NCBI GenBank assembly: GCA_020536535.1
Contig: JAHLWZ010000466.1
Coordinates: 1-39,655 of the forward strand
Direction of reading: 5' to 3'
DNA length: 39,655 bases
Origin: Pelomyxa schiedti
Lineage: Eukaryota; Protista; Evosea
Each line of letters begins with the position of its first letter. Position 1 is the first letter of the stretch. The notes beneath the pieces were generated by a model. It was not told the origin of the DNA, ran no database searches, and saw only the letters and a program-made list of their open reading frames with translations. Shown here piece after piece: positions 2,532 through 34,419 of this stretch. The translations under genes and the position numbers were made by a program.

Positions 2532-4137
2532 TTAGGGAGGAAGGACACCCTTGGCCTTGCCAATCTCAATGAAGGCATCTACGGCCTTGTCAATCTGCGC
2601 GATGGTGTGGGCTGCGGAGAGCTGGACACGGATGCGGGCCAATCCACGGGGTACAACAGGGAAGCTGAACCCAATGACATAGATGCCCTTCTGGAGCATG
2701 TCATTGCTGTAAGGGTGGTTAGGGCCGCGGTAAAAGAAACAGAGGGTACATACGCGAACTCAGTGGCCAATCTGGCGTCGCCTAGCATAACTGGGGCAAT
2801 TGGTGCAACGTCGTCACCGCGGAGGTTGAAGCCGGCAGCCTTCATGCGTTTGCGGAAGTGGAGGGTGTTTCGCTCCAACGTGTCGCGGAGCTCGGTGGAG
2901 GAGGAGAGGATATCGAACACCTTCAGGTAGGCACCAACAAGTGGTGGGGGTACACTGTTGGAGAACAGGTATGGGCGAGAGCGTTGCCTGAGGATCTCAA
3001 TGATGTCCCTGACAAGTATTAGTTGGTGATAAAACTTCAGGCCGGGTCTTACCTCCTGCCGGTTGTGTAGCCACCACTGGCTCCGCCAAGAGCTTTGCCA
3101 AGGGTGCTATTGATGATGTCAACCCTGTCCATGACTCCACAGTGCTCGCATGCACCGCGGCCAGTCCTTCCGAGGAAACCAGCAGCGTGGGACTCGTCAA
3201 CCATCAGAATAGCGTCGTACTTGGCTGCATATTCAAGTTAATGGTAATGTTGCTGACCATTGTAGACATACCACACAGGTCACAGATTGCAGCAAGTGGG
3301 GCAATGGTTCCGTCCATGGAAAAGACGCCATCTGTGCAAACACAGCGGATCCTCTGTGCTTGGGCCTCCTTGAGTTTTGCCTCCAAATCGGCCAAGTCAC
3401 GGTGCAAGTAGCGGTAGCGAACGGCCTTGCAGAGCCTCACACCATCAATAATTGAAGCGTGGTTAAGCTCATCAGAAATGATGGCATCCTGATCGGTAAG
3501 GAAGGCCTCGAAGAGTCCAGCATTGGCATCGAAGCAGCTAGCATAGAGAATAGTATCCTCAGTGCGGTGGAACTCACTGATCTGAACGTGATTAAGCAAA
3601 TGGTAACACGTGCGCCGAAAGTACCTTATTCTCGAGTTGCTTGTGGATATCCTGAGTTCCGCAAATGAATCTCACGGAGCTCATGCCAAAGCCACGCTCG
3701 TCCATGATTCTCTTGGCCTCAGCGATAAGAGTTGGGTTATCAGAAAGACCTATCCCACGGTTAACTCGACTTAAACTTAGATTGGAAAAAAAATACCCAA
3801 GTAGTTGTTGGCGCACATGCACAGTACCTCTTCAGTGGAAGTTGTAACACCGAGGTTAGCCCTAGGAAAGAAAGTGAATTAAGTGTTACACTCAACACAA
3901 AATGAACATAAAAAAAAAAAAAAAACAAATGCAAGTAAAAGTAATTATAATAAGGCGACAAACACACAAACACACGCACCTCTGAGCGGTGTTAATGATC
4001 CTCTCGGCCTTGTAGGTACCGGCGTTCTTGATGTCGGTGACCAACTGCTGCAGTGCGCGACCACACGTGTCGTTCCTGGCTCCCCCCGGCGTGCTGGGTG
4101 TCGTACTTGTCGCAGTTACGGGCGTGCTCGTGGCCAT
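2532..4137 (-). CDS. GCAT: 2-amino-3-ketobutyrate CoA ligase / glycine C-acetyltransferase (PLP class II aminotransferase), multi-exon
   Basis: Motifs [109 protein letters not shown]; stop after GVLPP. Confidence 0.95.
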
Positions 4138-4240
4138 TCTGATGTGTCGGGTTTTTTTGGTTTTGTGAAAAAGAGACAACTGCGTCTTTTCTTTAGCCTC
4201 TGAGATTTGTGGAATAGGAGAGAATCTGGATGATCAACTG

Positions 4241-5088
4241 ATGTACCCTGTGGCCATCTTGATAACCAATCAATCTGGAAGAAGGGGGCACCCGTTCGTC
4301 TCAGAGTCTTTCACAGGCCTAGCAGCAATCCCTTCCGGATTGCCCTCACAAGAGATCATAGCAGGAATTAGGAGACCGTTTCAGGTAAGGAGCAATGACC
4401 CACTTGCGTTACCCTCTCTGGGGCCTGGGTCCTATTACGCGGTCCCACCAAGGTTTGGTGGTGCCCAACATTGTAAACTTGCTAATGATGCCCAGGGCAT
4501 AGACATACACGCACCACCCAAAGTGCAAGAAGAAGAGATGGAGTTTTGGAAAGTGTCTTGTTGCCGATGCGATTAAGGTTAGAATTTCTTTTATTAAAAA
4601 GTCCTTCAGAGTTACCCCGGTTCAAGGCTGAAGTTGAAATCCACTAAAGGCAGCAGGTGCTGCACTTTTCATTCTAAAACCCCAGGGTACCCACAAAAAC
4701 AGAGGGCCAAGAGAATGACGGAAGCAGAAAGTAGATTACCGAAACTACAGAAAGAAATTGCGAAGATGAAAATACAAATGGTGAAAATGAAAGGAAAAAT
4801 GGCAGAAACGAAGAGCCAGCTGGCAAGTCTTGTGGTAACCTCGTCTCACAAAATCTACAAGTGCAACTCACTGAACTGAAGAGTGAAAATGCAACTCGCT
4901 GGAAGGAAAATGAAGCTTTGGAAGTAACACTCCTTAGAACCAAGACTCAAATCACGGAATTGACTCGTCAAGTGAATGAAGCAACCAAGCAAGTGAAGGA
5001 CGTGATGAGTCAATTGAATGAACTGAGGAAAGACACCGAAAGTCAACAGGTAACTTTTTTCCGCCATCCAACCTATTCTCACCCCTAA
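4241..5088 (+). CDS. Hypothetical protein with C-terminal coiled coil (exon structure uncertain)
   Basis: ORFs 4241-4576, 4634-4879 and 4861-5088 separated by intron-like segments; heptad-rich sequence (LPKLQKEIAKMKIQMVKMK, QITELTRQVNEATKQV). Confidence 0.45.
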
Positions 5089-5449
5089 TGCAAGGAAAAC
5101 CTTCACTTCCTTCCGGTATTTTCGCTTCTTCCCATTGAATATCTCATCCCAACAGGATTACTATGTGATAAACTTGTGTGACGAAATATTCACTCAGTCA
5201 CTAATGGTGGTGGCACAGGAGATATCAAGCACTCCCGAGCTCTAATCACTTTATATTCACCTTGCAAACTACTCTACCAGTGTCTCCACCGACAACAACT
5301 CAACCCGAGATTGTTGGTCCGAACAAAACCCACCAGCCAACATCAGTTCCCATTGTAGAAAGGAGGGTGAACAAAGAAAAGCCAACGCGTTCCCTGACTT
5401 TCGCTGTAATTCCAACTTTTTGTCCTTCCGAAAGTTCGGGGTGTTTGTG

Positions 5450-8257
5450 ATGGACCCAATCGACATCGACGGCGTGGATGTGCCGGCGGGGCTGCCGCCC
5501 CCTCCCGACGTCCCGGCGCCGCCGCCGCCCTCCCACCTGCCCGCCTCGCCGCCACCCCCTCCCCCGCCCTCCTCCCTCTCCGCCCCAACCATCTTCCAGC
5601 CTCCCTCCTTCGAGGCGCCCTCCCCGCCTCGCCCCTCCCGCGCCCCCCCGACCCTCGGCGCCGCGACTGGCTCCCCGCCGCATACACAGCCCCGCGGCCC
5701 CGTGGTGGAGGCGGAGGGCAGCGCCGCGGCCGTGGCTGATACACCGGGCCGGTGCACTGCGACCACCCCCTCGCCGTCTCCGCCTGGCTCGCCCTCGCCT
5801 CCGCTCCCGATGTGCCTGCTGCCTTGCCATTCGTGGTCCTCTGCCTCTTCGTCCTCCTCGACGTCTGCGTCTTCGTCGGCTTCGGCGTCGCCGTCGACGT
5901 CGCCACCCACAATGGGGTTTGGTTGCGGCGTAGGCGTGGCCACTATCACGTTCGGGGGGATCCAGCACCCTGTCGTTCCGTCGTTAGGATCCAAGCCCGT
6001 GAGGCCTTTGCTTGGAAGGAGGCCTGCTAATCAAGAACATCACAATCAGCAGCAGCAGGAACAACAGGTGTCACTACTACCAGCATCGGCCTCCTCACAA
6101 ATGAGTACGAGTACTGTATCCACGAGTATCTCGGCGTCAAGTGCATGTGGGAGTTCGGGGAAGTCGAGTGCTGGAAGGGCGCTTGGCAAGAGGTCTACTA
6201 CCATGGACAACTTGATGGAGATAGTCAACACTTTCAAGAGCGCTCTCCTCACAATTCATCGTACTATCTTATTTGGCTCTGTTTTGTTTAAAACTAACAG
6301 GCTTGTGTTTTATATTGACACTGTATGTACAAGTTACGGGTGGAACCAATCTGAAAACAAAAGGAGGAAAAGCAAGGCCGTCAACATTCTGTGAAATTTA
6401 CCTTTTGGATGGCACACCGACTTCCCCAACACCGAAAAAGAATCGGTCCAAGTTAATTGAAAGCGACTCCAATCCAGTCTGGTGGGTTTTACTGTTCATT
6501 GCCAGTATTGATAACATAATAGGGATGAAGAATTTTCCATGTGAGTGATGTGTTGCCTCAATACCACTTCATAATTGCGTCTATTTTTCAGAGAAGTTCC
6601 GCCAAGTACAAAAGCTCTGAGGATTGATGTACAAAGCTGTGGAAAACTCTCGAAGGACAAACTTGTTGGATATGTGGAAGTACCGTTTGCGGATTTCTCC
6701 CATTGGCAAAGGTTTTATTGGTTTCAATAATATAATCTAAAAGAAACAGCAATGGTGTAGCCCCTATGTGCGTGGAGAAGGGTAGCAAGGCTACGGGAGA
6801 AATATCGTTTTCTTTGAGTTTCACAACAGCTATGGATCGCAATAAATACCTGAGAATTTCTAAAGATTCCTATGATCAACTTCAGTCTGTTGTCTCCACA
6901 TCAGCAGGCATACCCTCACTTTCTTCAGATCCTCACCAATCCCGATTTATTCATCATCATGGCCATCTGCAGAGCTTTGTGGAATTCACTAGAAGATGCT
7001 TTTTCACTCGCCTTGATTCGATTGTTTCAGCAGAAAGGTTTGGCGAGGATTCTTGTAGTTAAACTGTTGACAAGAGAAGTCACTATGGGTATGCGAAGTT
7101 AGCACTGCCAATGTTGACGGCATCACCTCAGCTTCTGAAACAACCTTCCTACGGCAAAATACCCTGGCAACAAGGGTTACCATGCATTATTTTAAGCTAA
7201 TAGGCTTTGGTTATATTACAGCTGTTCTCAAACCACATATAGAAAATCTTCTGGCGGACGCTTCTGTGGGAGCTGACCTTAAGTATAAAAGTTGCTCTTA
7301 TCTTCATTTAACTTCAAACAAGAGAAGGGGATGGTTTTGCAGCAAATGTACGGCTGGCTGTATTATCCCAGGCCATACTTGACAGTCTTTTTCAAACCAC
7401 CAACCTAATGCCCCTGTATGAAATGCATCGTCTCCATACCATTCAACCATGAATACAAGGAACATGCGCCTTGTACTATGGGAAGTGAAGCAAATATTGA
7501 TAGAGCAAGGACGATCACAATTATCTTCCACGTTAGCTATCGCAATTTTCTTTTTAAGATATTTCTGTCCTGCTGGTACGAATTTTCCATCTTCACTTTA
7601 ATCTGATGTAAGACGCAGTTTTCTTCCCGGAACAGTTTTATATTACCTCAGGTTACACAGATTGACAAGGTTTTTGTTGTGTCCATTTACTTCGATTAGC
7701 ACCGATAACTCCCGAGTCTCGTCGTGCCCTTACACTGATTGCAAAAGTCATTCAAAGTTTAGCAAATGCCTCGCGGCAAGAGTGCGTAACTGAATCTTTT
7801 TCCGCCTTGAAACTGATGGATTTACAGTGACCCGCACGAAAATTCCCACATGGAAATAATTACTCAACTTATAGAGCCTCTCAGGGAACCCATGGACCGA
7901 TTCACCATTAGCATAATGGTTGAACCTTCCCTCTTTTTGCCCACTCCTGACCTTTTACCCAGGAAAAACCGGAATCTGGGCCCCCTGATGAAACCCACTC
8001 CCAGTTGGAAGAAGAGGACTATCCTAAGTTGATGGCTATAGTGGTACCAATGCCCAAATCGATTCCAACTTCCCCTCATTACCTGCATAGGTCAGAAAAC
8101 TTGCTGAAAACTTCACTAACATTGAAGAATCAATCAAAACAAGCAATGACACATGTGCCGAGGACTACCTCGCCATAGTATGCACACATCACCCTATTCT
8201 TATCTGATAATAATACAGGCCGAATTCGAAGTGTTGAAGTCCATAATCATTGGCTAA
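5450..8257 (+). CDS. Ras GTPase-activating protein with Pro/Ser-rich N-terminus and C2 domain
   Basis: C2-like exon (GGTNLK...TFCEIYL...SKLIESDSNPVW); RasGAP arginine finger TFLRQNTLATR near 7140-7175 and signature FLFLRYFCPA near 7545-7575; RRALTLIAKVIQSLAN. Confidence 0.88.
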
Positions 8258-8379
8258 CCAAAAACTACTACTATTGTTGTAATTTAGGCAAAAAAAAAAA
8301 GCAATCAATCTGCCATCAATTTCCCCTAACAAGACACGTAACGAAAAACAAAATTTCTTCCGAAAGACAGGGGCACAGT

Positions 8380-13125: not shown

Positions 13126-13778
13126 CTATTTTCTGTTCGCAGCCTCAAATTCCCTGAGCTGTGCCACAATGGCAGAGTCAGGTCCCACTCCCGGAATTGA
13201 GTTTGGCATCGCAACCCCTGCCTTGATTAGCAGCTTAGCGCAGCCGGCCTGGTCGTTGTAGATGGCGAACAGCAGGGGAGTGGTGCCATCGCTGTCAGGC
13301 CGGTTGAGCTCCGCGCCCCGGCTTATGAGAAGCGCGAGGGTCTCCTCGTCGCCGTCGCCGCAGCACATGGAGAGGGCCGATCGGCCCGACTCGGAGCCGA
13401 CGAGCGAGGGGTCGCAGTGGCCCTCGTTTAGCAGAATCGGGATGATCTGGCGGCGCAGGACGATGCCGCCCTCGTAGTTGAGGAACGTCGCGGCGACGAT
13501 CGGGGGCGACGTCGGCGGCAGGCGGACGTCGGCGCCGCGGGCGAGGAGGAGGCGGACCATGTCGATTTGGCCGTCGGTGCTGGCGAGGCTAAGGGGTGTG
13601 TTGAAGTCATCGGATACGACGTTGATTTCGCCAGGGAACTGGTCCAGTATTTCCGTCACCTTTTGGTTTTTGATGTTATTGATTTGTTTAGTATTTCGGC
13701 ACACCTTGGCCAAGTCGTTGGCCTTCACTGCCTCAAAAAAGTTGGTCTTGAGTGACGGGCTGGAAACCCCGTTGCCAT
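13126..13778 (-). CDS. Ankyrin repeat protein (about 4-5 repeats); start codon unresolved
   Basis: NTPLSLAS.DGQIDMVRLLLARGA, GRSALSMCC..GDEETLALLISRGA, DGTTPLLFAI..DQAGCAKLLIKAG; one intron near 13660-13705. Confidence 0.85.
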
Positions 13779-14021
13779 CGTCTTCGAAGTGTTTGTTTTT
13801 CTTGTTCTTTTAGTTTTCTTGGTTAGTTCCTCGGTTTGGTTCTTTCCAGGAACCCAGTTTCGAAGAAGCCTGTTGATCAACTCACAGCTTCCTGGGATGC
13901 CAAGAATAATTTTGTGAGGAGACTCGAAGACTCCAACGCTCGAGTTTTTCCGAGTTTTTTTGTCTCAAAACTTGGTTTTTCTGAAGTTTGTTTTTTATCT
14001 TACAAAAAGAAACACGTTTGA

Positions 14022-17000
14022 ATGGCTACAAGTGGCAGCAATGTGGTACCACAGTCGACCACAACAACACCCTGTGACCCAGTTTCCATTGTCAACAACA
14101 CAAGTTGTTTGTCCACCACGGTCAGTGCCTCGGCCACTCCGTCAAACAAATCTGAGGCCACATCTGCAGCTACAACAACAACTAGCGGCATAAATGGAAG
14201 CAATTGCGGCGAGTGTGGGGGTGATCAAGTGGTGGCAAAAGCATTGTTACCCCCGTCAAAGGAGTTGAGGTGTGTACTAAAAAAAAAACAAATCTTGATA
14301 GAGGAAGAAACACGCGGGAGGGATTCGCCTATTGTGTATTGACAAAATTTGTTTCGTTTTTGTTTAGGCCGTATCAACTTGAACTGTTGGAAATATGTAA
14401 AAGGGGAAATACCATTATATCGTTAGATACAAATACTGGTAAAACTCTAATCGCGGTGGCACTTGCCAAGTGGATGCATAGCCAATATCCCCGAAAAAAG
14501 GGTATGTTGAAATTTTATTTGCCTCTTTCTAACAATACGAAGTCTTTTTCATCGTGCAAAATATTAACTTGGCCACACAACAAGCAAGAGAGTTCATAGC
14601 CAATTGCGAATTAGAGTATGAATGAGCTTGCATGTATTTCCTCTAACACAGGACTCCAGAGTTGACGATATGTTTGGAGGACACTGTGGTAATTGGAATT
14701 TCATGATGAAGACCAATGACGTTCTTGCTTTTACTGCTCAAGTTTTGTGTAACGAACTGCCAAACAACCCAGATTTATTGGATGATGTATCTTTAATTGT
14801 ACGCTGATCCACTTTTCCTAGTTCTTACTTGTGCAGATATTTGATGAATGCCATCACACACTCAAGGGGCACCCTTTCAAAATAATCATGGATCATCTCA
14901 ACTCCCAGCACAAACTTGGAAAGGCCGTTCCATTGGTAACTCATACAAAGCTACGATTCCGTTAGCTAAGAACTCTCTGAGATTCTTGGTCTTACTGCTA
15001 GCCTTGCTTCGAGGGAAACCTTGGGTGAAACTATAATCTCAACACTCAATATGTGCTCCAATCTTCGTTCAGTTGTCTGCACTGCTGATACTACCTCATA
15101 TTATGAGCTTACTCAGGTTGAATCACCCCTGTGGGAGTAAATAACTAACAGATCTAACCAGGAAGATGTCTACGAATTGATGATGGATGGTTCTTCTGTA
15201 ATTCTTCACGATGTTATAATCTCTATTATGCGAGAGCTAACTCGGAAACTTTCTTTGTGCAAAGTATCTACGTCTATGTTATCTTTCTTCATATAGAACT
15301 CATCTTTTCCAGAGTTCATTTTCCCAGGGTTTTGAGCCGGGTTCGGAGAATTTTTCGCAATGGGCTAAAGGACAAAAGAGAGTACTTCCCAGAGAAGATA
15401 TATCAATACAGAGGGCGGCGTTCCCTCTTTTGAAAGTCCTCAGGATATTGAATAGAGGCCTTATATTCCTTGATGAAATCTCATGTAAATCGGCGTGCGT
15501 TTCCTCTTATTTTTTCTTTACCTCATGAGTATCCAGCTGGGATTATGTGAAAAGGGAACTCGGCCAAGAAGAAACTAACGCTGAAGCGAAGTTGCTTTGT
15601 ATAGAAACCCTGGAGAAAATTAGGGGGTCTCTTTTTAAAGAGAAGATCAGCGAAGACACTCTTCCACTTGAATCGGCCAAATTGCACCAACTCCGAGACA
15701 TCTTGGCAATGGTGTGAATACCATTTTCCCTAGATCAATTTTCTGACCATCACTAAACTCAGATGCACAATAAATCCCACAAAATCCTCCTCTTTGTAAA
15801 GACACGTAAAAGTGTTAGTGAACTTCTTGGTATACTTGAAAAAGATCTGCCCATTACATCTCGGGGTATAACCGGTCATGGGAGCAAGAAAATGACCCCC
15901 ACAGCTCAACGAGAAATCCTCGACCAGTTTCATGCTGGGAAGTTTGACATGTAGGACCGCCACATTTTTTGTGTGATTCTCGGACTCATCTTGTCCCAGG
16001 TTAATAACAACCTCCGTAGTTGAAGAGGGGTTAAATGTACCCAAATGCAACATGGTAATTAGATATGACGCAATAAGTTCCACTCTCTCTCTTATTCAGT
16101 CCCGGGGAAGGGCTCGGCAACCTGGCAGCAGGTTCAATTATTGCCTGAATTACGTCTCCTTATTTCTCCTAGGTTTCTCGTGATTTACCATAAGATTGAA
16201 AGTAATTCCCACAGAGTACAAACAATACTACATATTTGACTGTTTCTTCAGAGGGTCAATGGTATGAGATGAAGAAACGGGAATCTCTGATGAAGAGGGC
16301 TATTGGCATTGTATCGAAGGGATTACGAACAATCGACCTCTCTACCAATGAAATACCACTCACTTTAAGCTCTCCCTTATGGAGTATTGTTCTTGAGGAT
16401 ACACAGAAGAACCTAGAAATACAGGGAGAAAGAGCCATGAAGGTGCTTTGTGCCCCGAAACAGGTTTTTCTTCAGGTTTTTTTTTGATGATTTTACTCAC
16501 TTTTTGCTCCAGTATTTGATAAACACCTGCTCAGTTCTTTTTGGTGAGAATATCAAGACAACATTCACGCAGTCCGGACCCTATTTTTCATGCACTCTTC
16601 AAGCCGGGTTGGGACTACAGAGTTTCATGGCCTGCACTGACAACTTTTTATTAGGCCTTGTGAGTTTTCATCACTTAATCAATCACTCAGGCAGTCTGAA
16701 GCAGAGAACCAAGCTGTCAATGCGGGGATCACTTTTTTCCTGAAACGTGACTTGGTAGTCATGTCAATAAAAGTATGAAATAGTCCTTTATTTTTCTTGA
16801 TCACTTCTTTGTAGGGTTGCACACAGGCTCAAACACCACTGAAAACACCCATTATGGTCCTTGGGGAGCGCTGCAAAAGTTTCGATTTGGAGTATCAACG
16901 ACTCTAACATGTGTTGAACTTATGTTCCTTCTCCTAGGCCTCCGCAGTACGTAACACTCCCTGCTGACGTTGCAGGGCAGCTCAAATGGCGCTCAACCGT

Positions 17001-17732
17001 TACAATTTTACTACCATACGAACCGATTAGTGTATGTGGTACCTACTCTGCTACCAAGAAGGGTGCTGAGGAAGATGCCGCCACCGCGGGCTTGGAGAAA
17101 CTCGAAAGCGTAATTGGGGACTTGATACCAACAGCACCCCCTTCGTCCACAGGCACCACCGCTCCTGAGTTAGGCAGAATCAAGTCCAAGTTAAATATGT
17201 TTTGCCAAAAGAACCGGCTCAGGTTTTCTTCCCGCTCCCCTACACCCGTTCTAATCCCGGTTATATACCGGAACTGTACAGCCTGCCGCAATATGAAACC
17301 ATAGCAGCACCAAGACCGCAAAGGGTCCCGCTATTCTACTGTTCAATCAGCATTCCACCCAGAACATGGACCACACCCACCGGTTCTACATCAAAGAAAG
17401 AAGCCGAGGATTCCGCCGCAGCACTGGTTCTAGCCGACCTAGAAGACCCCCTCACAGCCGTCACCACCTCACAATCATCACAGTCACAATCACCATCAGC
17501 AACAACGAACCCACAGGCGCGCCTCAACCACACTTTACAAATGGCAAGGGGCAAAGTGGGCATGTCAGAATCATGTACTGCTACAGCACCGTTTGTTGCA
17601 CGACTTACAATAACGGCACTGGGCAAGGATCACGTTTGCGCGTCTGATCCTTGCAGGTCAAAGGCTATGGCCAAGTCACAGGCTGCACAGAGGGCTTGTG
17701 ACTTGTTGGCCCAGTTGGGCCTGCTTATTTAA
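14022..17732 (+). CDS. Dicer/RIG-I-family (SF2 DECH-box) RNA helicase with 3-4 C-terminal double-stranded RNA-binding domains
   Basis: Q motif LRPYQLEL; motif I DTNTGKT; Ia NLATQQ; [10 protein letters not shown]; III ILGLTAS; [10 protein letters not shown]; [14 protein letters not shown]; VI QSRGRAR; dsRBD signatures [21 protein letters not shown]...[18 protein letters not shown]...[14 protein letters not shown]. Confidence 0.9.
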
Positions 17733-17762
17733 AACAAGAGAATGTATTTATAAATAGAATGT

Positions 17763-18960
17763 TTATTTGTTTTCTCTTAGAATTGCTGAGTTATACAAGA
17801 GAGGAGGCATAGGAGGCATAGGATCCACAAAACTATGAATAAAGTGTTGAGGGAGGACTCACTTGGGCACCAGTCCAGAGGAAAAACATAATCAAGTTCG
17901 CAACGCCCATTTTCGCGTGGGTAACCAACCTAAATGGATATTAATGGAATGAATACTGTGAGAAAGGTAGTACCTGGTTACTTTTGCATAGTACACCATT
18001 TATGGTGTCTTCTCGTGAGTAGTGAGTGTGGCCATAGAACCAAGCCTTTACCGGGGAGTTCATCATGTGCCGGAGGTCTGTTTCAAACGCGGAATTGGCC
18101 GGGTACCCAATGTACTTTGGATGTGCATTGGGAATGGGAGCGTGGTGAGTGAGCACAATAACCCGTTTGCAATCGGCTTTGGCTTTTTTGATCTGAGTCT
18201 CTAGCCAGACCCGAGATTGGTCATGCCAGCCGTTTGTATCGTCTACTGTTATTTCCTTATGCCCGATTAAGTGAAATGAACAAATATTTTATTAGCGGCA
18301 GTAATATACCTTGGCTTCACCAGCGGGTGAAAGTGCCCTAATGAGTCGGTAGTCATTCAGAGTTGCAGTCACACACCGAGCACTCTGGGGAGGCACATGC
18401 GACCACAGTGTGCAGCCCAGGATTCTCCAGTTCGTTTCTGGAATATCAAAGCTATTGTTTTCGAGAATCACGATGTTAGGTAGGCTTCCAACAATTTCAG
18501 CAATGAGTGACTTGCACTCCCCAGTCTCACTCCCATAGAACTGCACTTATATTGTTGTTATAAGGTATTGCGATATTGTTAAACAAAAACAAAAACAAAA
18601 AAAGATGACATACTTCATGATTTCCATAAAGAAGGAACACCTTGTCAAACTGTTTGCTGACCTTTAATTTGTGAGCGAGGTCCAAACCACAAAAAAAGAA
18701 AAAAGAAATTGTGATACCTACTCTAAGGAGGAACTCCTTGTAGAATTGAATTGCCTTTCCATAAACAACACAAATATCACCCAACAAGGCCAAATACCTC
18801 CCACATCCTCCAATACAAAACTCTTCCATGTTGGTCCGGTGCTCCTATGTCCCGTAAGTCGTTTTCAACCACGTCCACTTATGCATAAAAAAGGTACCAA
18901 ATGAGTATCAGACAACACTTGCAGCCCGTTTACAGTGACCTCCGGTGCAACGGCCGACAT
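17763..18960 (-). CDS. Calcineurin-like metallophosphoesterase
   Basis: All five metal-binding motifs after splicing: LSDTHL, LLGDI, YGNHE, LTHHAP, FYGHTH; also ILGCTLWS and SNQ(V)GY. Confidence 0.9.
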
Positions 18961-26204: not shown

Positions 26205-29200
26205 TTATGGATTGTGTGTTGCAGTAGGACGAGGTTCCGCAATAAGTGAAAGGTCAAAGCACTCCTTTTCAGAGACACCCTTCACATGCTGGTTCAGGAA
26301 GGTGTAAATACTGCACAAGCAAGGCGGATCAGTAAGGCTTATACAATACTTGTTGGGGAGAACCTTTCAACTTTGGCAAAATTGTAAGGCTGTTGTTGGT
26401 ATCTCTGCAGTTCCTGTATTACGCCAGCCACCATGGCAAATTTGCAATAGTTAACAAGGCCTGCTTCTGTTGTATCTGGATTTCCCTCCTCTGCAGTATA
26501 GTATTAGAACCTGCCATTGGGTAAAAAAAAAAAGGAATACACACCAATGAATGTGAGGTCACTGAGATATACCCCAAGGTAAGGGATGCATGGTGGATTG
26601 GCTCTTCTTACGGCATCTCGGTATGCCGCGAAGTTGCCCGTGGGTGCTGTAAGTGTAGAAACTTTGTCCATCACTTTGTTGTTGTCTTTGAACTTGAAAT
26701 GGAAGTTGTAAGTGATATACTTCAATGCAGAAAATAATCGGATTGCACTACTAACCTCAGCCCACATTATTTTGAGCCGGCCGACGGAGGAAGAGCTAAG
26801 TCCGGATGAAATTTCAAATACAGCATTCAGATTGTTCAATTTGATAAGCTCCTGTAGTGAGGTTTAGATGGGAAATAAAATGGAGCAGAATGGGCTGGAA
26901 CTCACTTCCAGTACTTTAGTGAATCGCTTTAAAATGCCAAGCCTTCTTTTTAGAAGTGGTTCTTTGCAAATAGTATAAGAAACCCAGTTGCTTATCTGGA
27001 TCCTTGCTAAATACACTAAAGTTTGAAAGGATATCTGCACACTGTGTTGAATTTATGGATCATGGCAAGTAGATTGGGGCTCTTGAGCTCCTTATCTTTC
27101 TTAGACCAGGAAAGAGAAAACATCTCTTTTGCTTGTATGGTCTATTTGTGTATGAGAATCAAAAAACTCCTAACGGAAAACTTACCCGGAATATATCGAA
27201 TTCCATCAGTGAGAGCTGCCTGGCAATCTCAATTGGATCCATATCCTCAAATCCTGGCCTAGCAGTAGGAGGCAATATAGAAGCGGGCGGTGGTTGACTG
27301 AAAACATAAGGCCTGGGTAAGTGGGAGTTCTACAGAAACGTGTACAGTTAGATCGAATCCAAGGAGTCTCCTACGTACAAAAGGGGCAATAACTTTCTTC
27401 TCGAAATTAGTTCGTAATGTTGCTACAATGGTGTCATTCTTCTGGTTCTTGTCAAGAAACTCTTTGGTTGCTTCAATCACCGAATCTTCTTCAAAGTCAT
27501 GCCAGTAGTGGTCCACCCACCGTTTCACAATGTTTACGATTCTACCGGTGTGAAATTAACGTTCAAGGAGTATTTGGATTGTAATGACCTCAGCCGGGTC
27601 TTCTTCTTGTTTAAAACTTTGTCTGCCACGGACTGGAAAAGAAGTGTTAGTTGCACCCAAATAAATTTAATGGAACAAACCCCATCCGCTATTTCAGCAG
27701 CACTACTCAAGTTGTCTTCATATCTGAGGGAATTTAGTACTAATGACATAAGTGGTAACACCCACGCTTTAAACAAAATACGCAGGACTGTTAATGTCTC
27801 AGTGAAACTTCTGAATATAAGCATAAAAATAACAGAATATGTGCCTGAAAGTAACTCAGTAATGGAACGATTGCCTTGGAGAAAGCAAACAAATCACCAT
27901 CAGCATTGGGGGAAAATAAAAGCTCAACCAGTTTCTGGACGGTTCCTGGACAGTGGTTGGAAACGATTCATCGTCAAAAGGGAGACTCTTGAAACCTGCT
28001 TTGAGTTCTCTGGTTTCCACGCCATTTTTGGTCTCCAATGCGTAAACAAGTCCTTCCTCTTGTTGCACTCCAGACTGTAAAAAAAAATCAGTCAAAGCTA
28101 TTGGTTTCAGTTTTGAAAATCACAGTGGGTGTAGTTTCTGCAGCCTCTGCTTCGGCTGTGGATGTTGGAGTGGGTGCCGGTGGAGTAAGCATTTCTTTTA
28201 GGTGGTCTTTCTAAATCTTGTAAGTTTTAAGTGCGGTTCAACAACAATATTTTACTTGCTCTGGTGTTAGAAGAGACATTGCTGTAGAGTGCTCTTCAGA
28301 TAAGATAAGAATATTTTTCTGAGGATGGATTTGTTACATGTAAAGAGTGGTGGGAAATACGAACCAATGTAATCACATTGGAAAGTAATGATAGTAACTC
28401 AAACCGTCGAATTGTATTTTCTAACTTAGCGCTTGCCATATAAACTTCAGGATGAATTGCTTTGCTGTGCATCTGGACTGCATTATATATTTGAGTGATA
28501 ATGCCACTCTGTTCAGGAAATCGTTTCAGTCCACTTTTTGTTTTGTTAAAACGATTAACAAAGAGAGCTTTTCCTCAAGTACATACATTTCTTTAAGAAT
28601 GGAAAGATTAGCATGCAATGAGAGAATATCAGTGGACAGCATCTTGTTTTCATCAACAACGCTCTCTAAATTTGTTAAAACCGGAAAGAATTCTGCTTCT
28701 ATTACCAATGCTACTTGTTTTTAGTTGCCATCTAGAAGATATCTCTTCAAGAAGACTGCCTCCCACTTGCTTGATATTCACCCTGAATTAAAGTTACGAA
28801 TCTGAACAATTGCAAAATTGAGATACGTTGCTGAAGTTGAGGATCGCAGTGGGGTTGAGCTAGCTGGAAGCGGATTTATTGCTAATTGAGAAACACCTGA
28901 GGAAAGTGACACAGTATGCCTATAAGAGGCAGGTGGTTGTGGTCTACCAGGGTTTGAAGGTGACATGTTTGATGAGGACAGACTTTTTGGTGGCTGTGGT
29001 CTGTTTGCAGGAGTGACTGGACTGGAAGAAATGTGCGAAGCAGTGGAGCTTGGTGGGTGAGGTGAAAGAGGTGGAGAAACAGATAGCGGGCCAGGGCCCG
29101 GCGGCAAAGGGGCTGGAGCAGTTGGCTTGGAAGGACACCATATTGGACTTTCTGCCAATATTTGTTAGGTCAGAAGTACATGTTGTGTCTTACGAACCTT

Positions 29201-31020
29201 TTAAAATTCCCTTCTGCACAACTTCTTCGGGAGTGATTCTGGTTTCCAGAAATTCAGAAATCACTTCACAGACTTCGTCTTTATTCTGTAGTGGAAGAAC
29301 GTTCTCCTTAGGCATATCTGGGGGTTTTGGGACCGTTGCGGAAGGAGATCTTGGTGGTGGTAACGTTGGGGGAAAACCTACACTTGCTTGAGAAATTCAG
29401 TGTGTTTCACTGGGGAATTTTACCCTTTCCAATTGGTGGCAATGATAGACGATTAGCTGTCTTGTTTGGCTAGGGAATATGAGATCGAAAAGGGAAAGGA
29501 AATTTGGTTACCATGTCTGCTGGTTTTGCAATAACTGCTGGGCCTTTGACGTTGGACGTTGAGTTACGCAAAGGTTGATTAGATAAGAGAAGTGATGAGA
29601 CATTAGAAGATGGTGTCACAGTTGGTGAAGGAGGAGAGTTTTTCCCTATAACAGCAAGTGACGCTGCTCTTCTTAAGGGTGGTTGCGTCTTGTGTTTGTC
29701 TACTGAAAGGGTTACACAAGATAAAAAAAAAGGTGGGGCGTGGGTGGGGGGCTGCCTGCTATTTGGAAACTGTTTCGCAGAGCTGCAACCACTGGAGGAG
29801 GAGATGTTTCAGTATGTCTTGGCAGCGCACCAGGTGATTGCTGACTGGGAGGACCTATCTTTGGTGACGGGTTGCTTGTTTGAGATAGAGGAGGAGGGCC
29901 AATATGCTGGGGAGGTGGAGGGCCAATTGGTTGCGGAGGTGGGGGACCAATTGGCTGGGACGGCGGGGGGCCAACTGGTTGTGGAGGTGGTGGACCAACA
30001 GGCTGCGGAGGCGGAGGGCCTACTGGCTGGGGAGGTGGCGGCCCAATTGGTTGCACAGGGGTGTCAACTGGAGGTGGCGGTCCAATTGGTTGCAGTGGGG
30101 GTGGAGGAGCTGTAATTGGTTGGGGAGCGATTGGCTGAGGAGGGGGAAAATTAATCATATCTGGAGGTGGTGGTAGGTCAGGTGTAGCAGGAGGTGAAGG
30201 AACATCGGGTTGAAGTGGAGTGGGGGGTGGGGTAGAGGGGGGAAGTGGAGCTGGTGCCAAAACTGGAGGTGGTGCCGGCGTGAACAGGACAGGAGGTGGT
30301 CCAAATGACTCTAGAGAAAGCGGAGCAACTTGTGGTGGGAGAGATGGGGGCCGAGGAGAGGTTGAGGGCAAAGGAGGGTGTGGACTATTTGTGTTCTGAA
30401 AGTTGTCACTAACAGGAGGCTGAGGGATTGGTGGTGCTGGGGATGCCTGTGGAGGAGTTCCGGTTTGAATCCCTTTAATGGCTGCCAGTGCAGCAAGACA
30501 CCGGTAGACCTAGAGTTGTTAAAATGGAATGACAAAAAGTATTATGCTGAGTGCCTGTGGAATGTTGTATTCGTTGTACAGATCAGTTACACTAAATATA
30601 TCATCTTTTGACACCCCGAGAGTTTTACATGCAGTGAGGAAATTCTCAATATTGATCTGAGAAGATATTGGGATTTTATTTATTCGGTCCTGTAGCACTT
30701 TACCTTGTGGTGCAAAACACTTGGCTTGGGTGCAGGTGCTATGTTTGGTGATATAGTATTTACAGCACTATTTAAGAATCAATATACATAACCAAACCAA
30801 GGTTGTTACAGACTTGATTAAAATTACACCAGACCGAATGGCCTTTGGCAGAGTTGCAGGATCCAGAGTTGATAACGCGGTATCAGAAGGCAGGCATGTC
30901 TGAAGGAACTTCAGTGTCCCTAAGTCCCTTCATTATCATATTGCAAATGAAATAACAACAAACAAACACGCAGGGAATTGTTGTAAAAATTGTTGACGTT
31001 CACACACCCCCAGCGTCCAT
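26205..31020 (-). CDS. Ras guanine nucleotide exchange factor with N-terminal calponin-homology domain and long proline-rich region
   Basis: CDC25 core NNLNAVFEISSGL, NFAAYR...PPCIPYLGVYLSDLTFI|EEGNPD; REM-like VKRWVDHYWHDF; CH-like AIRSGVIL...INIENFLTACKTLGVSKDDIFSVTDLY; start approximate. Confidence 0.87.
29890..30125 (-). repeat. Coding tandem repeat, 24-nt unit encoding P(I/V)GPPPPQ, about 7-8 copies
   Basis: Translation QPIGPPPPQPVGPPPPQPVGPPPPQPVGPPPSQPIGPPPPQPIGPPPPQHIGPPP with synonymous variation between units. Confidence 0.9.
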
Positions 31021-31214
31021 CGTCCAACTGTTCGAAAAACAGAGAGTTTTTTTTACCGCGAACTGATTTCTCCAAGCAACAACCACGAAGGAGAAAAGCC
31101 GGTAATCAAAAACCACAAAACGAAAATGGCAGTCTGCTATTCTCAGTATTGTGGGGGACAGGAGAGACGGTGTCCCATGATCACGGCAAACGGGGACCCT
31201 CCTTGCACTTGAAT

Positions 31215-32912
31215 TTATCTTGTACCCTTGTTTCCGGCTCGGCGTAACTCTGTGGATGAAATCTGTTGTTTTGTATCCTGGTTAGACAGATAAAAAAAAA
31301 AGAAGGAATATACATCAAGCCGGAACGGCAGTTCTGAGAGCAAGCCATGGAATTGTTGCATTGGCAGTGTTGGTAGCAATGTGGTCAGTGTTTGGTAGCC
31401 ATTGTCCATCTTCCGGCCGGCAACAAGGAATTTGCAGCCCAGAGACTGTATCTCGCCCAGAACCCGCGTTGCTTCTTCCTCGGAATTGTTGTAGTACTTG
31501 GTGTTCAACAACCTGCAGAATAGAGGTTTGTATGTGTTTCGTTCGGTGTGTTTGTTGTGCAAACCTCACAACTGTGTCAGTTCCGACTAGGAAGGTACTT
31601 CCAGGGTATAAGCGGGCTTTATCAATAAAAAGTGCAGTCCTTGACAGCAGAAGCGGCCATCGCCCTGTGCGAGAATGTTAACATTTATTGAATGATAAAA
31701 ACAAACCTGCAAACTGAGCTGCTCTGACCAAAGTTTCGGCCGCCGAAAGACCGGGTTTATCTGCATTGGTAACACCAAGTTCGGCATAGACAGTAGGTGA
31801 CCCAAGTTGGCTTTCGGCTTCACTACTCGTTGGTTAATACTCGCCAAAGAAAGTTGTGGCAAGGGAAAAAAACCGCATGAGAGCTCGGTGGCCAATATGA
31901 AACGGGTTGAAAGACCCCGTGAAAATGATTCTATTCCCTGGTGGCAACCTGAAACTTCATTGAGTGTATCGAAATGAAGAGGAAAAGCAAACGTTGACAC
32001 CACTTGGCCATTGGGAGGTAATAGTAAAAGGTTTGTATTTCCAGACAACAGAGATTCCACATGTTGCAAGAGAGAACATACAGTGGGTGTCACGGCGGGC
32101 CTGTCAACGATCTATGGTGCAAAAAGCGTGAGTTTTCCCTTAAAGGAAAGGTAAAATAAATGCTCCTTGCCAGAGACTTAAGGACAACCGTGGCTTGTAA
32201 CAGAGGCAATGCCATCGATGTCACAATGGAGGATAAGTGCCTTACATCACTGACTTCGGCTGACACGTGACTGTCACCTTAGCATAGGTTAAAACAAAAA
32301 TAGAATCGAGGTTGTCCACAAGAATAGTGTATCCCAAAATGATTCCGATAAAAAGGGTAAGTGCAATCCACAAATTGAGTACCAAACACACCCAAATCAC
32401 TACATGTATTTCAGTTTTCTTAACTTCCTCAATAGGAAATATAACAATCCCCACCCCTATTGCCTTGCCGCTTATCCCGTAGGGATTGGGATCCAGCTGT
32501 AGAGCCTTGGTGAAGGCTCTGCCTGTTTAATATATTATAACGGATTCGTGAGGAACCCTATACATGGAGCTCCCAGCCGACCATACCAGCAAACATGTGG
32601 CACAGGTCACGCGGACTTCTTTCCACACGCGAATTTTTAAGGCCCAACAGCCTGGACGCAGCACTATCACACGTGACTGCGACCGATTGTAACACACACC
32701 CACCAACTCCAATCTATCTTCTATGTCAGTACTGTGTGACTTGATTCATGCTTATATATATGCGCTTTTTAAGATAAACATACGTCTTTGAACAATGGGG
32801 TTAACCAACAGTTGCCGTGTGTCACCACGGAAACGCCCCTTCCCATAATCGCAGCGGCAGTATCCGCCGCAACTACATCCTGCAACAGGCTCCTCGTGTC
32901 CCCTGTGGTCAT
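31215..32912 (-). CDS. HIGH-motif nucleotidyltransferase (cytidylyltransferase/NMNAT-like) with an additional N-terminal domain
   Basis: IIFTGSFNPFHIGH near 31885-31930, SITNADKP, FIDKARLYPGSTFLVGTDTVVR|LL, FLVAGR, C-terminal ISSTELR. Confidence 0.85.
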
Positions 32913-33097
32913 TCCCTCGTCTCTTTGTCGTTTGGTTTGGTGAGTCTAATCTATTGAGGGGACGAAGAGCAGTTTGCTTCCTTAGGAAATGGGGCTGAAA
33001 AGCACCAATGAAGCACTGTGTTAGGTTGGATCACTAAATCTTTGCTCCTCAGTTTCGCTGCAACGAGCAGGAAAAAACAAAATAATCACGAGGTGAC

Positions 33098-34419
<1,322 letters not shown>

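Follow-up and report, generated by a model that had tools for sequence, protein, structure and literature searches.

Dicer helicases and RIG-I-like receptors (RLRs) form the two arms of an ancient motor family activated by double-stranded RNA (dsRNA), which raises the question of when, and in what way, free sensors separated from Dicer. The question is posed again by a locus of Pelomyxa schiedti, an anaerobic archamoeba (Amoebozoa), on contig JAHLWZ010000466.1 of assembly GCA_020536535.1 (39,655 nt, the whole of which is the window referred to below), where positions 14022-17732 of the forward strand encode a predicted helicase followed by an array of dsRNA-binding domains (dsRBDs). An earlier note, made from the sequence alone, had described this protein as a candidate dsRNA sensor or as a subunit of a split Dicer. 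Is it an RLR, a part of a Dicer, or neither, and what might such a motor do in a protein that carries no nuclease?

The helicase core

The gene has 18 exons with 957 codons and a stop, and all of its introns are of the GT..AG type and 38-98 nt long (three-frame translation of 14000-17760). Its product is already public as GenBank KAH3762313.1 (957 aa, here P0001), under the automatic name 'melanoma differentiation associated protein-5 [Pelomyxa schiedti]', and the in-frame peptide of each exon falls at the expected place in it, so that our gene model and the public protein are the same. Single exons were searched one by one, and every full-length analysis used P0001; a search with exon 10 against 1.84 billion representative proteins had P0001 as its sole match (100% identical over the exon). 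The parts of the protein, in window coordinates, are as follows.

14022-14269, + strand: exon 1, a Ser/Thr-rich disordered N-terminal region of ~80 aa, with no recognisable domain and no CARD
14368-15179, + strand: Hel1 (first RecA lobe), aa ~83-282, from ResIII/DEAD Pfam matches, the model and Foldseek matches to RIG-I/MDA5
15189-15633, + strand: insertion of five helices, of the Hel2i type, separating the two RecA lobes, aa ~286-403, from the model, a weak Pfam RIG-I_C match and Foldseek
15676-16191, + strand: Hel2 (second RecA lobe), aa ~418-542, from a Helicase_C Pfam match and the model, with motifs IV, V and VI (QSRGRAR)
16257-16319, + strand: pincer-type long helix after Hel2, aa 548-568 (model residues 473-493)
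16455-16745, + strand: dsRBD-fold unit 1, aa 614-678, by fold (pLDDT 75-89), with no Pfam match
16848-17118, + strand: dsRBD-fold unit 2, aa 699-773, by fold (pLDDT 71-87), with dsrm at 0.01 on exon 17
17182-17441, + strand: dsRBD unit 3, aa 795-861, a canonical Pfam dsrm (1e-12), with DND1_DSRM at 8.5e-9
17514-17717, + strand: C-terminal dsRBD-fold unit 4, aa 886-953, by fold (pLDDT 81-90), with Dicer_dimer at 2.6e-4 and dsrm at 1.5e-3
17730-17732, + strand: stop codon, end of the helicase gene

Motifs I, Ia and II-VI are all present in the translation, where we read RPYQLEL, TNTGKT (Walker A), DECHH, ILGLTAS, ITGHG..MT...Q.EIL.QF..G and QSRGRAR; those of Hel1 are Q/I (PYQ..TNTGKT), Ia, II (DECHH) and III (TAS). 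Pfam matches ResIII (4e-17, aa 80-237), Helicase_C (2e-19, aa 419-530) and dsrm (3e-18) on P0001, and no Pfam family at E <= 10 on exon 1. An alignment of 67 sequences gave an AlphaFold2 model of aa 76-600 (pLDDT 90.6, pTM 0.88) that shows Hel1, a five-helix insert, Hel2 and a long helix after Hel2. The helices of the insertion lie at model residues 211-328, mostly with pLDDT > 88, and the region has a weak match to Pfam RIG-I_C (PF18119, 1.4e-3). The earlier note had claimed a complete superfamily 2 (SF2) helicase with motifs of the Dicer/RLR clade, a helical insert between its RecA lobes and a pincer-like helix behind them, and all of these are borne out by the translation, Pfam and the model.

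By fold, the core is closest to the RLRs and by sequence, among solved structures, to an ancestral Dicer helicase. Foldseek with the core model returned RIG-I, MDA5 and LGP2 at TMq 0.71-0.77 over ~530-580 columns, DRH-1 at 0.74, the ancestral Dicer helicase at 0.68 and DCL4 at 0.66. Among solved structures the best sequence match was the ancestral Dicer helicase AncD1D2 (8e-43), followed by RIG-I (3e-39), DCL1 (9e-38), MDA5 (1e-35), LGP2 (8e-35), human Dicer (1e-31), Hef (5e-28), DRH (4e-25) and FANCM (3e-18), and a look-up in the ESM Atlas returned generic helicase clusters only. The motifs and the model together identify the core as an intact Dicer/RLR-type 'duplex-RNA-activated ATPase' by prediction, with Hel1, Hel2i, Hel2 and pincer in place and all ATPase motifs kept.

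The C-terminal array

The tail (aa 575-957) was modelled from a 3-sequence alignment with a mean pLDDT of 59, and within it three confident alpha-beta-beta-beta-alpha units (units 1, 2 and 4, pLDDT 70-90) stand out. The identity of unit 3 comes from its Pfam dsrm match, the model being of low confidence there. One degenerate and three clear dsRBD-like units had been proposed, at 16435-16740, 16830-17105, 17178-17440 and 17505-17720, and four units are indeed present, three by predicted fold and unit 3 by Pfam, with bounds close to these; indeed all the elements listed in the earlier note were found at the positions given or within ~20 nt of them. To judge by sequence reading, a basic helix-2 motif of the dsRNA-contact type occurs in three of the four units: where helix 2 begins, unit 2 has TKKGAE, unit 3 has SKKEAE and unit 4 has RSKAMAK. 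Unit 1 has RQSEAE at helix 2 and is therefore without a motif of the KKxAK type.

Unit 1 stands where Dicers carry DUF283 and RLRs their C-terminal domain (CTD), and we considered it as 'the' DUF283 of the protein. When nine Dicers were used to build a DUF283 profile for hhalign, however, unit 1 reached a probability of 27%, as against 93% (E 4e-7) for unit 2 and 92% for unit 4, so that unit 1 is not favoured over the other two; unit 4 also has a ...GLL stretch resembling DUF283, and Pfam Dicer_dimer on P0001 fell below the cut-off. By these profile comparisons, no single unit can be named as the DUF283 homologue, and the tail as a whole appears Dicer-like in flavour. The best Foldseek matches of the tail were TARBP2 in the Dicer complex (2.7e-8), DCL3, TRBP dsRBD1-2, R2D2, DCL4, DRB4 and Loqs-PB, with HYL1 also found. 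Since TRBP, R2D2, Loqs and DRB4 are among the best fold matches, the proposal that a Dicer/DRH-like motor and an RDE-4/TRBP-like array share one chain fits the tail well.

None of PAZ, Dicer_platform, RNase III (PF00636), CARD and RIG-I_C-RD (PF11648) was found by Pfam on P0001 at E <= 1, as had been claimed for PAZ, RNase III, CARD and the RLR CTD, and there is no room for a PAZ domain between the dsRBD units. Pfam also found no ERCC4 or HhH domains on P0001.

Paralogs and relatives

Two further full paralogs are encoded in the P. schiedti genome, P0003 on contig C887 and P0002 on contig C1051, each ~40% identical to P0001. Both have the layout of P0001 (helicase, pincer and dsRBDs) minus unit 3, which is found in P0001 only and has no counterpart at that position in the paralogs. 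The pincer helix is conserved in all three, as is the Walker A sequence TNTGKT. Their automatic names are 'MDA5' (P0001), 'endoribonuclease Dicer 3' (P0002) and 'MDA5' (P0003), which are inconsistent as well as misleading, and to our knowledge the P. schiedti helicase-dsRBD protein, present in GenBank under such a name, has not been described. The public models of the paralogs are also incomplete: P0003 is without its N-terminal Hel1 exons, though the DNA has them (locus L011, ~1973-2600), and P0002 is without part of its last dsRBD unit. Two small contigs, C3300 and C2630, carry additional paralog fragments with near-identical exons, and the Walker A helicase exon occurs twice near the end of C1051 (6445-6320 and 5804-5649). 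These pieces and the duplicated exon probably represent assembly redundancy of whole-genome-amplified single cells, or else a fourth copy.

A profile of the trio, searched against 5.8 billion proteins, found no orthologue outside Pelomyxa in the length range 526-1675 aa; the score falls from 1353 to 196 bits, a level reached equally by an annelid RLR and a fungal Dicer. From these searches, the family appears to be confined to Pelomyxa, with three paralogs and perhaps a fourth. The MMETSP protein P0025, used as a query, revealed a large family of free Dicer-like helicases of 600-1100 aa in dinoflagellates, Chromera, diatoms, brown algae, Euglena, Mesostigma and others (P0025, P0121-P0207). Many of these carry a C-terminal dsrm and some an N-terminal Z-alpha domain (PF02295), several are automatically named 'Dicer-like protein', and the family is apparently uncharacterised.

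The uniqueness that the earlier note implied for this architecture does not hold. The gene was already in GenBank, it has two paralogs with the same layout, helicases with C-terminal dsRBDs and without RNase III are widespread in dinoflagellates, Chromera and their relatives, and Dictyostelium HelF carries a dsRBD (PMC4894637). That the architecture might already be both described and widespread had been allowed for, and it has proved widespread, while a paper describing such proteins was not found. The trio is a lineage-specific variant of known modules.

Phylogenetic placement

The arm of the motor family on which the trio is placed differs between the two trees. In the 67-row helicase tree the trio (100/100) falls outside Hef and is weakly sister to the RLRs (70/31), whereas in the 32-row tree it is sister to Dicers and free helicases (96/91). 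Approximately unbiased (AU) tests were run on the 32-row set. Constraining the trio with the RLRs was not rejected (p 0.081), while constraining it with the P0025-type family (P0025, P0124, P0131 and relatives) was (delta lnL 18.7, p 0.007). Orthology with this dinoflagellate-type family is thereby ruled out, and its helicase-plus-dsRBD layout looks like one of independent origin.

An affinity with Hef/FANCM is likewise ruled out by both trees, which separate the trio from Hef (100/100), and by the lack of ERCC4 and HhH domains; the claim of a free-standing Dicer/RLR-clade helicase, distinct from Hef/FANCM, is thus upheld by the trees and Pfam alike. The trio thus seems to fit none of the three groups (RLRs, Dicers and Hef/FANCM helicases), and the trees suggest instead a separate, deep and long-branched lineage of the Dicer/RLR superfamily, on the RLR side in the 67-row tree and on the Dicer side in the 32-row tree.

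RNA interference genes in the genome

The genome that houses the trio (52.4 Mb, 5337 contigs) is equipped for RNA interference (RNAi). At least four Piwi/Argonaute loci are present, along with two full-length Dicer-like genes, on contig C866 (~4000-8300, - strand) and contig C275 (~29200-34100, + strand), both with a C-terminal dsRBD in addition to RNase IIIa and IIIb signatures, and the former with a weak PAZ match. RNase III matches in the genome were confined to these two contigs. RNA-dependent RNA polymerases (RdRPs) are encoded as well, one of them on contig C602. The RNAi setting that the earlier note had proposed is therefore present, with Argonaute, RdRP and Dicer genes all found. Its minimal RNase III lacking a helicase is not what the genome contains, since both Dicer-like genes keep a helicase region, although with degenerate ATPase motifs: GKT is missing, the exons read DDFH or DFCS where DECH would be expected, and LGLTAS has become LGLTTM or VGLVCM. 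From these motifs, the Pelomyxa Dicers probably have dead motors.

With P0001 as query, tblastn gave no match on either Dicer-like locus, which rules out P0001 as a recent duplicate of a Pelomyxa Dicer. A genome-wide search for PF11648 (RIG-I_C-RD), made with no positive control, found none. On contig C351 (~48900-53300, + strand) an RdRP (PF05183, 4e-160, one 1280-aa open frame) is immediately preceded by a Dicer-type helicase, to which it is probably fused, an arrangement resembling the Dictyostelium Rrp proteins. Among the helicases of the genome outside the trio, the one on C351 is the most similar to P0001.

Proposed function and alternatives

For the function of P0001, we would give about an even chance to an ATP-driven, dsRNA-binding RNAi cofactor acting in trans for the Pelomyxa Dicers. 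In this mechanism, modelled on DRH-1 and RDE-4 with DCR-1 and placed in a single chain, the dsRBD array would capture long dsRNA, the helicase would clamp the duplex and move along it (or discriminate it) with ATP, and P0001 would thereby recognise, hold or feed dsRNA for two Dicer-like enzymes with degenerate helicase motifs. A fully 'split' Dicer, in which the Dicers have lost ATPase activity and ATP-driven dsRNA recognition and threading are supplied in trans by free Dicer/RLR-type motors with a TRBP/RDE-4-like dsRBD array, would go further, and we think it rather unlikely. Several observations weigh against a cofactor role. The link between P0001 and the Dicers is drawn only from co-occurrence in one genome and from analogy, and the ATPase-dead state of the Dicers was judged by the motifs in their genomic exons and not on a validated protein. 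The Walker A sequence of P0001 is TNTGKT, not TGxGKT, so that ATPase competence is presumed, and the divergence of the three paralogs would also suit an antiviral sensor. Finally, HelF has been reported to suppress RNAi, not to assist it (PMC2175303), and among characterised amoebozoan proteins it is the closest analogue.

The divergence of the paralogs (~40% identity), which would suit an arms race, is one reason to consider a stand-alone, RLR-like cytosolic sensor of viral dsRNA, in which the helicase and the dsRBD array would bind long or foreign dsRNA and thereby set off defence through a putative adaptor independently of dicing. RLRs also lead both the fold matches and the single-sequence matches outside Pelomyxa, the 67-row tree places the trio next to them (weakly, 70/31), and this placement was not rejected in the AU test (p 0.081). 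We nevertheless regard a sensor as improbable, given that P0001 has neither an RLR CTD nor any signalling domain such as a CARD, that no PF11648 match turned up genome-wide (in the search without a positive control), that the trio falls beside the Dicers in the 32-row tree (96/91), and that Amoebozoa are not known to have a MAVS-like pathway. A modulator of RNAi seems somewhat less doubtful; it would either restrain RNAi in the manner of HelF, by sequestering or remodelling dsRNA, or be a DRH-3-like partner of the helicase-RdRPs in the making of secondary small RNAs. HelF pairs a dsRBD with a Dicer-related helicase (PMC4894637) and its deletion leaves cells hypersensitive to RNAi (PMC2175303), and P. 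schiedti encodes RdRPs, one of them probably fused to the helicase that most resembles P0001 outside the trio; on the other hand, the dsRBD of HelF is N-terminal, the likeness is one of description, HelF was not among the best 120 matches, and the Pelomyxa RdRPs already carry a helicase of their own.

All of these readings presuppose that the gene model is sound, and an artefact, be it a truncated or mis-joined Dicer model or neighbouring helicase and dsRBD genes fused by the annotator, has very little to recommend it. The public paralog models are imperfect, as the missing N-terminal exons of P0003 illustrate, and the runs that bear the locus are all DNA contigs, so that the splice model is sequence-based. 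Against this, frames and phases are unbroken through 17 short GT-AG introns, the order from helicase to dsRBDs recurs in all three paralogs, which are unlinked and whose junction regions are conserved, the stop codon is followed 31 nt on by the end of a convergent open reading frame, and the RNase III matches of the genome all lie on other contigs. The helicase-dsRBD gene is, from the evidence of its reading frames, real, intact and expressed-looking.

Gene structure and neighbouring genes

The exons of the gene, all on the + strand, are as follows.

Exons 1-9: 14022-14269, 14368-14501, 14543-14615, 14660-14798, 14837-14935, 14982-15116, 15162-15263, 15313-15494, 15537-15711
Exons 10-18: 15763-15950, 16000-16131, 16173-16201, 16252-16463, 16513-16607, 16655-16772, 16815-16891, 16938-17222, 17282-17732

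Exon 12 (16173-16201) is a micro-exon of 29 nt within Hel2. A model built by hand (955 aa) had used an exon at 16513-16659 and a 35-nt intron within dsRBD unit 1, and was dropped for the public junctions 16607/16655, which are preferred since they need no 35-nt intron and since, in all three paralogs, the conserved Gly is followed by 13 residues that are alike in length and pattern. Frame continuity, conservation among the paralogs and the public model are the grounds on which the proposed splicing stands. Four sequencing runs contain the locus, all as collinear DNA contigs of one sample that is probably the source of the assembly. The genome is a single-cell assembly with 7.4 introns per gene and gene models made with transcript data, and the paper describing it does not mention RNAi genes (PMC8887013).

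On the downstream side, the minus-strand open reading frame of a convergent multi-exon gene (17763-18830) ends at 17763, 31 nt beyond the stop of the helicase gene, in agreement with the distance of ~30 nt noted earlier. One of its exons reads GHTHYSRED and is metallophosphoesterase-looking, and its single exons have no Pfam match. Upstream, an ankyrin-repeat protein is encoded at 13126-13728 on the - strand (Ank 9e-17), and the divergent intergenic stretch up to the ATG of the helicase gene measures ~290 nt.

Significance

The trio represents a deep-branching, free-standing member of the motor family outside animals, in which dsRBDs replace the RLR CTD and whose host has Dicers with apparently dead motors. 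The combination of a free motor with a dsRBD tail and apparently dead Dicer motors makes P. schiedti a natural test case for a possible outsourcing of helicase function, comparable to DCR-1/DRH-1/RDE-4, and the trio would give one more data point on the root of the RLR/Dicer tree. If the trio is truly the sister of the animal RLRs, then free RLR-type helicases would be older than animals and dsRBDs would be the original RNA-recognition tail.

Comparison with known systems

Like P0001, the RLRs (RIG-I, MDA5 and LGP2, and DRH-1 of Caenorhabditis elegans) have a DECH-type SF2 core with Hel2i and pincer and are free-standing, with no nuclease. They are its best structural matches (TMq 0.71-0.77), at 25-31% identity over the whole core. 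Tandem N-terminal CARDs are found in RIG-I and MDA5 only. P0001 differs from the RLRs in being without the zinc-binding CTD, CARDs and an N-terminal domain of the DRH-1 type, and in having four dsRBD folds outside the helicase instead. With the helicase, DUF283 and dsRBD parts of fungal Dicers, DCL1 and AncD1D2 (its best solved-structure match by sequence), it shares a module of dsRBD fold after the pincer, but unlike the Dicers it has neither platform/PAZ nor tandem RNase III domains.

Two other kinds of free helicase invite comparison. P0025, P0124, P0131 and P0136, of the family found in dinoflagellates, Chromera, diatoms, Euglena and others, resemble P0001 in having a helicase core followed by dsrm and no RNase III; they differ in having one or two dsrm, an identity of ~28% and, in some, an N-terminal Z-alpha, and a common clade with the trio was rejected. 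Dictyostelium HelF, with its N-terminal dsRBD and Dicer-related helicase (PMC4894637, Fig. 2), is, as is P0001, an amoebozoan, free-standing Dicer-related helicase with a dsRBD, and HelF is genetically linked to RNAi through the hypersensitivity of its deletion (PMC2175303). Compared by description and not by sequence, HelF has one N-terminal dsRBD in 837 aa, as against the four C-terminal units of P0001, and it was absent from the best 120 matches of any protein search.

The system that P0001 most readily calls to mind is that of C. elegans, where DCR-1, DRH-1 and RDE-4 form one antiviral complex in which DRH-1 does most of the ATP hydrolysis (PMC11095941). There, an RLR-type motor and a multi-dsRBD protein stand beside Dicer as separate chains, whereas the Pelomyxa protein, by what is an analogy only, would join the first two in one chain.

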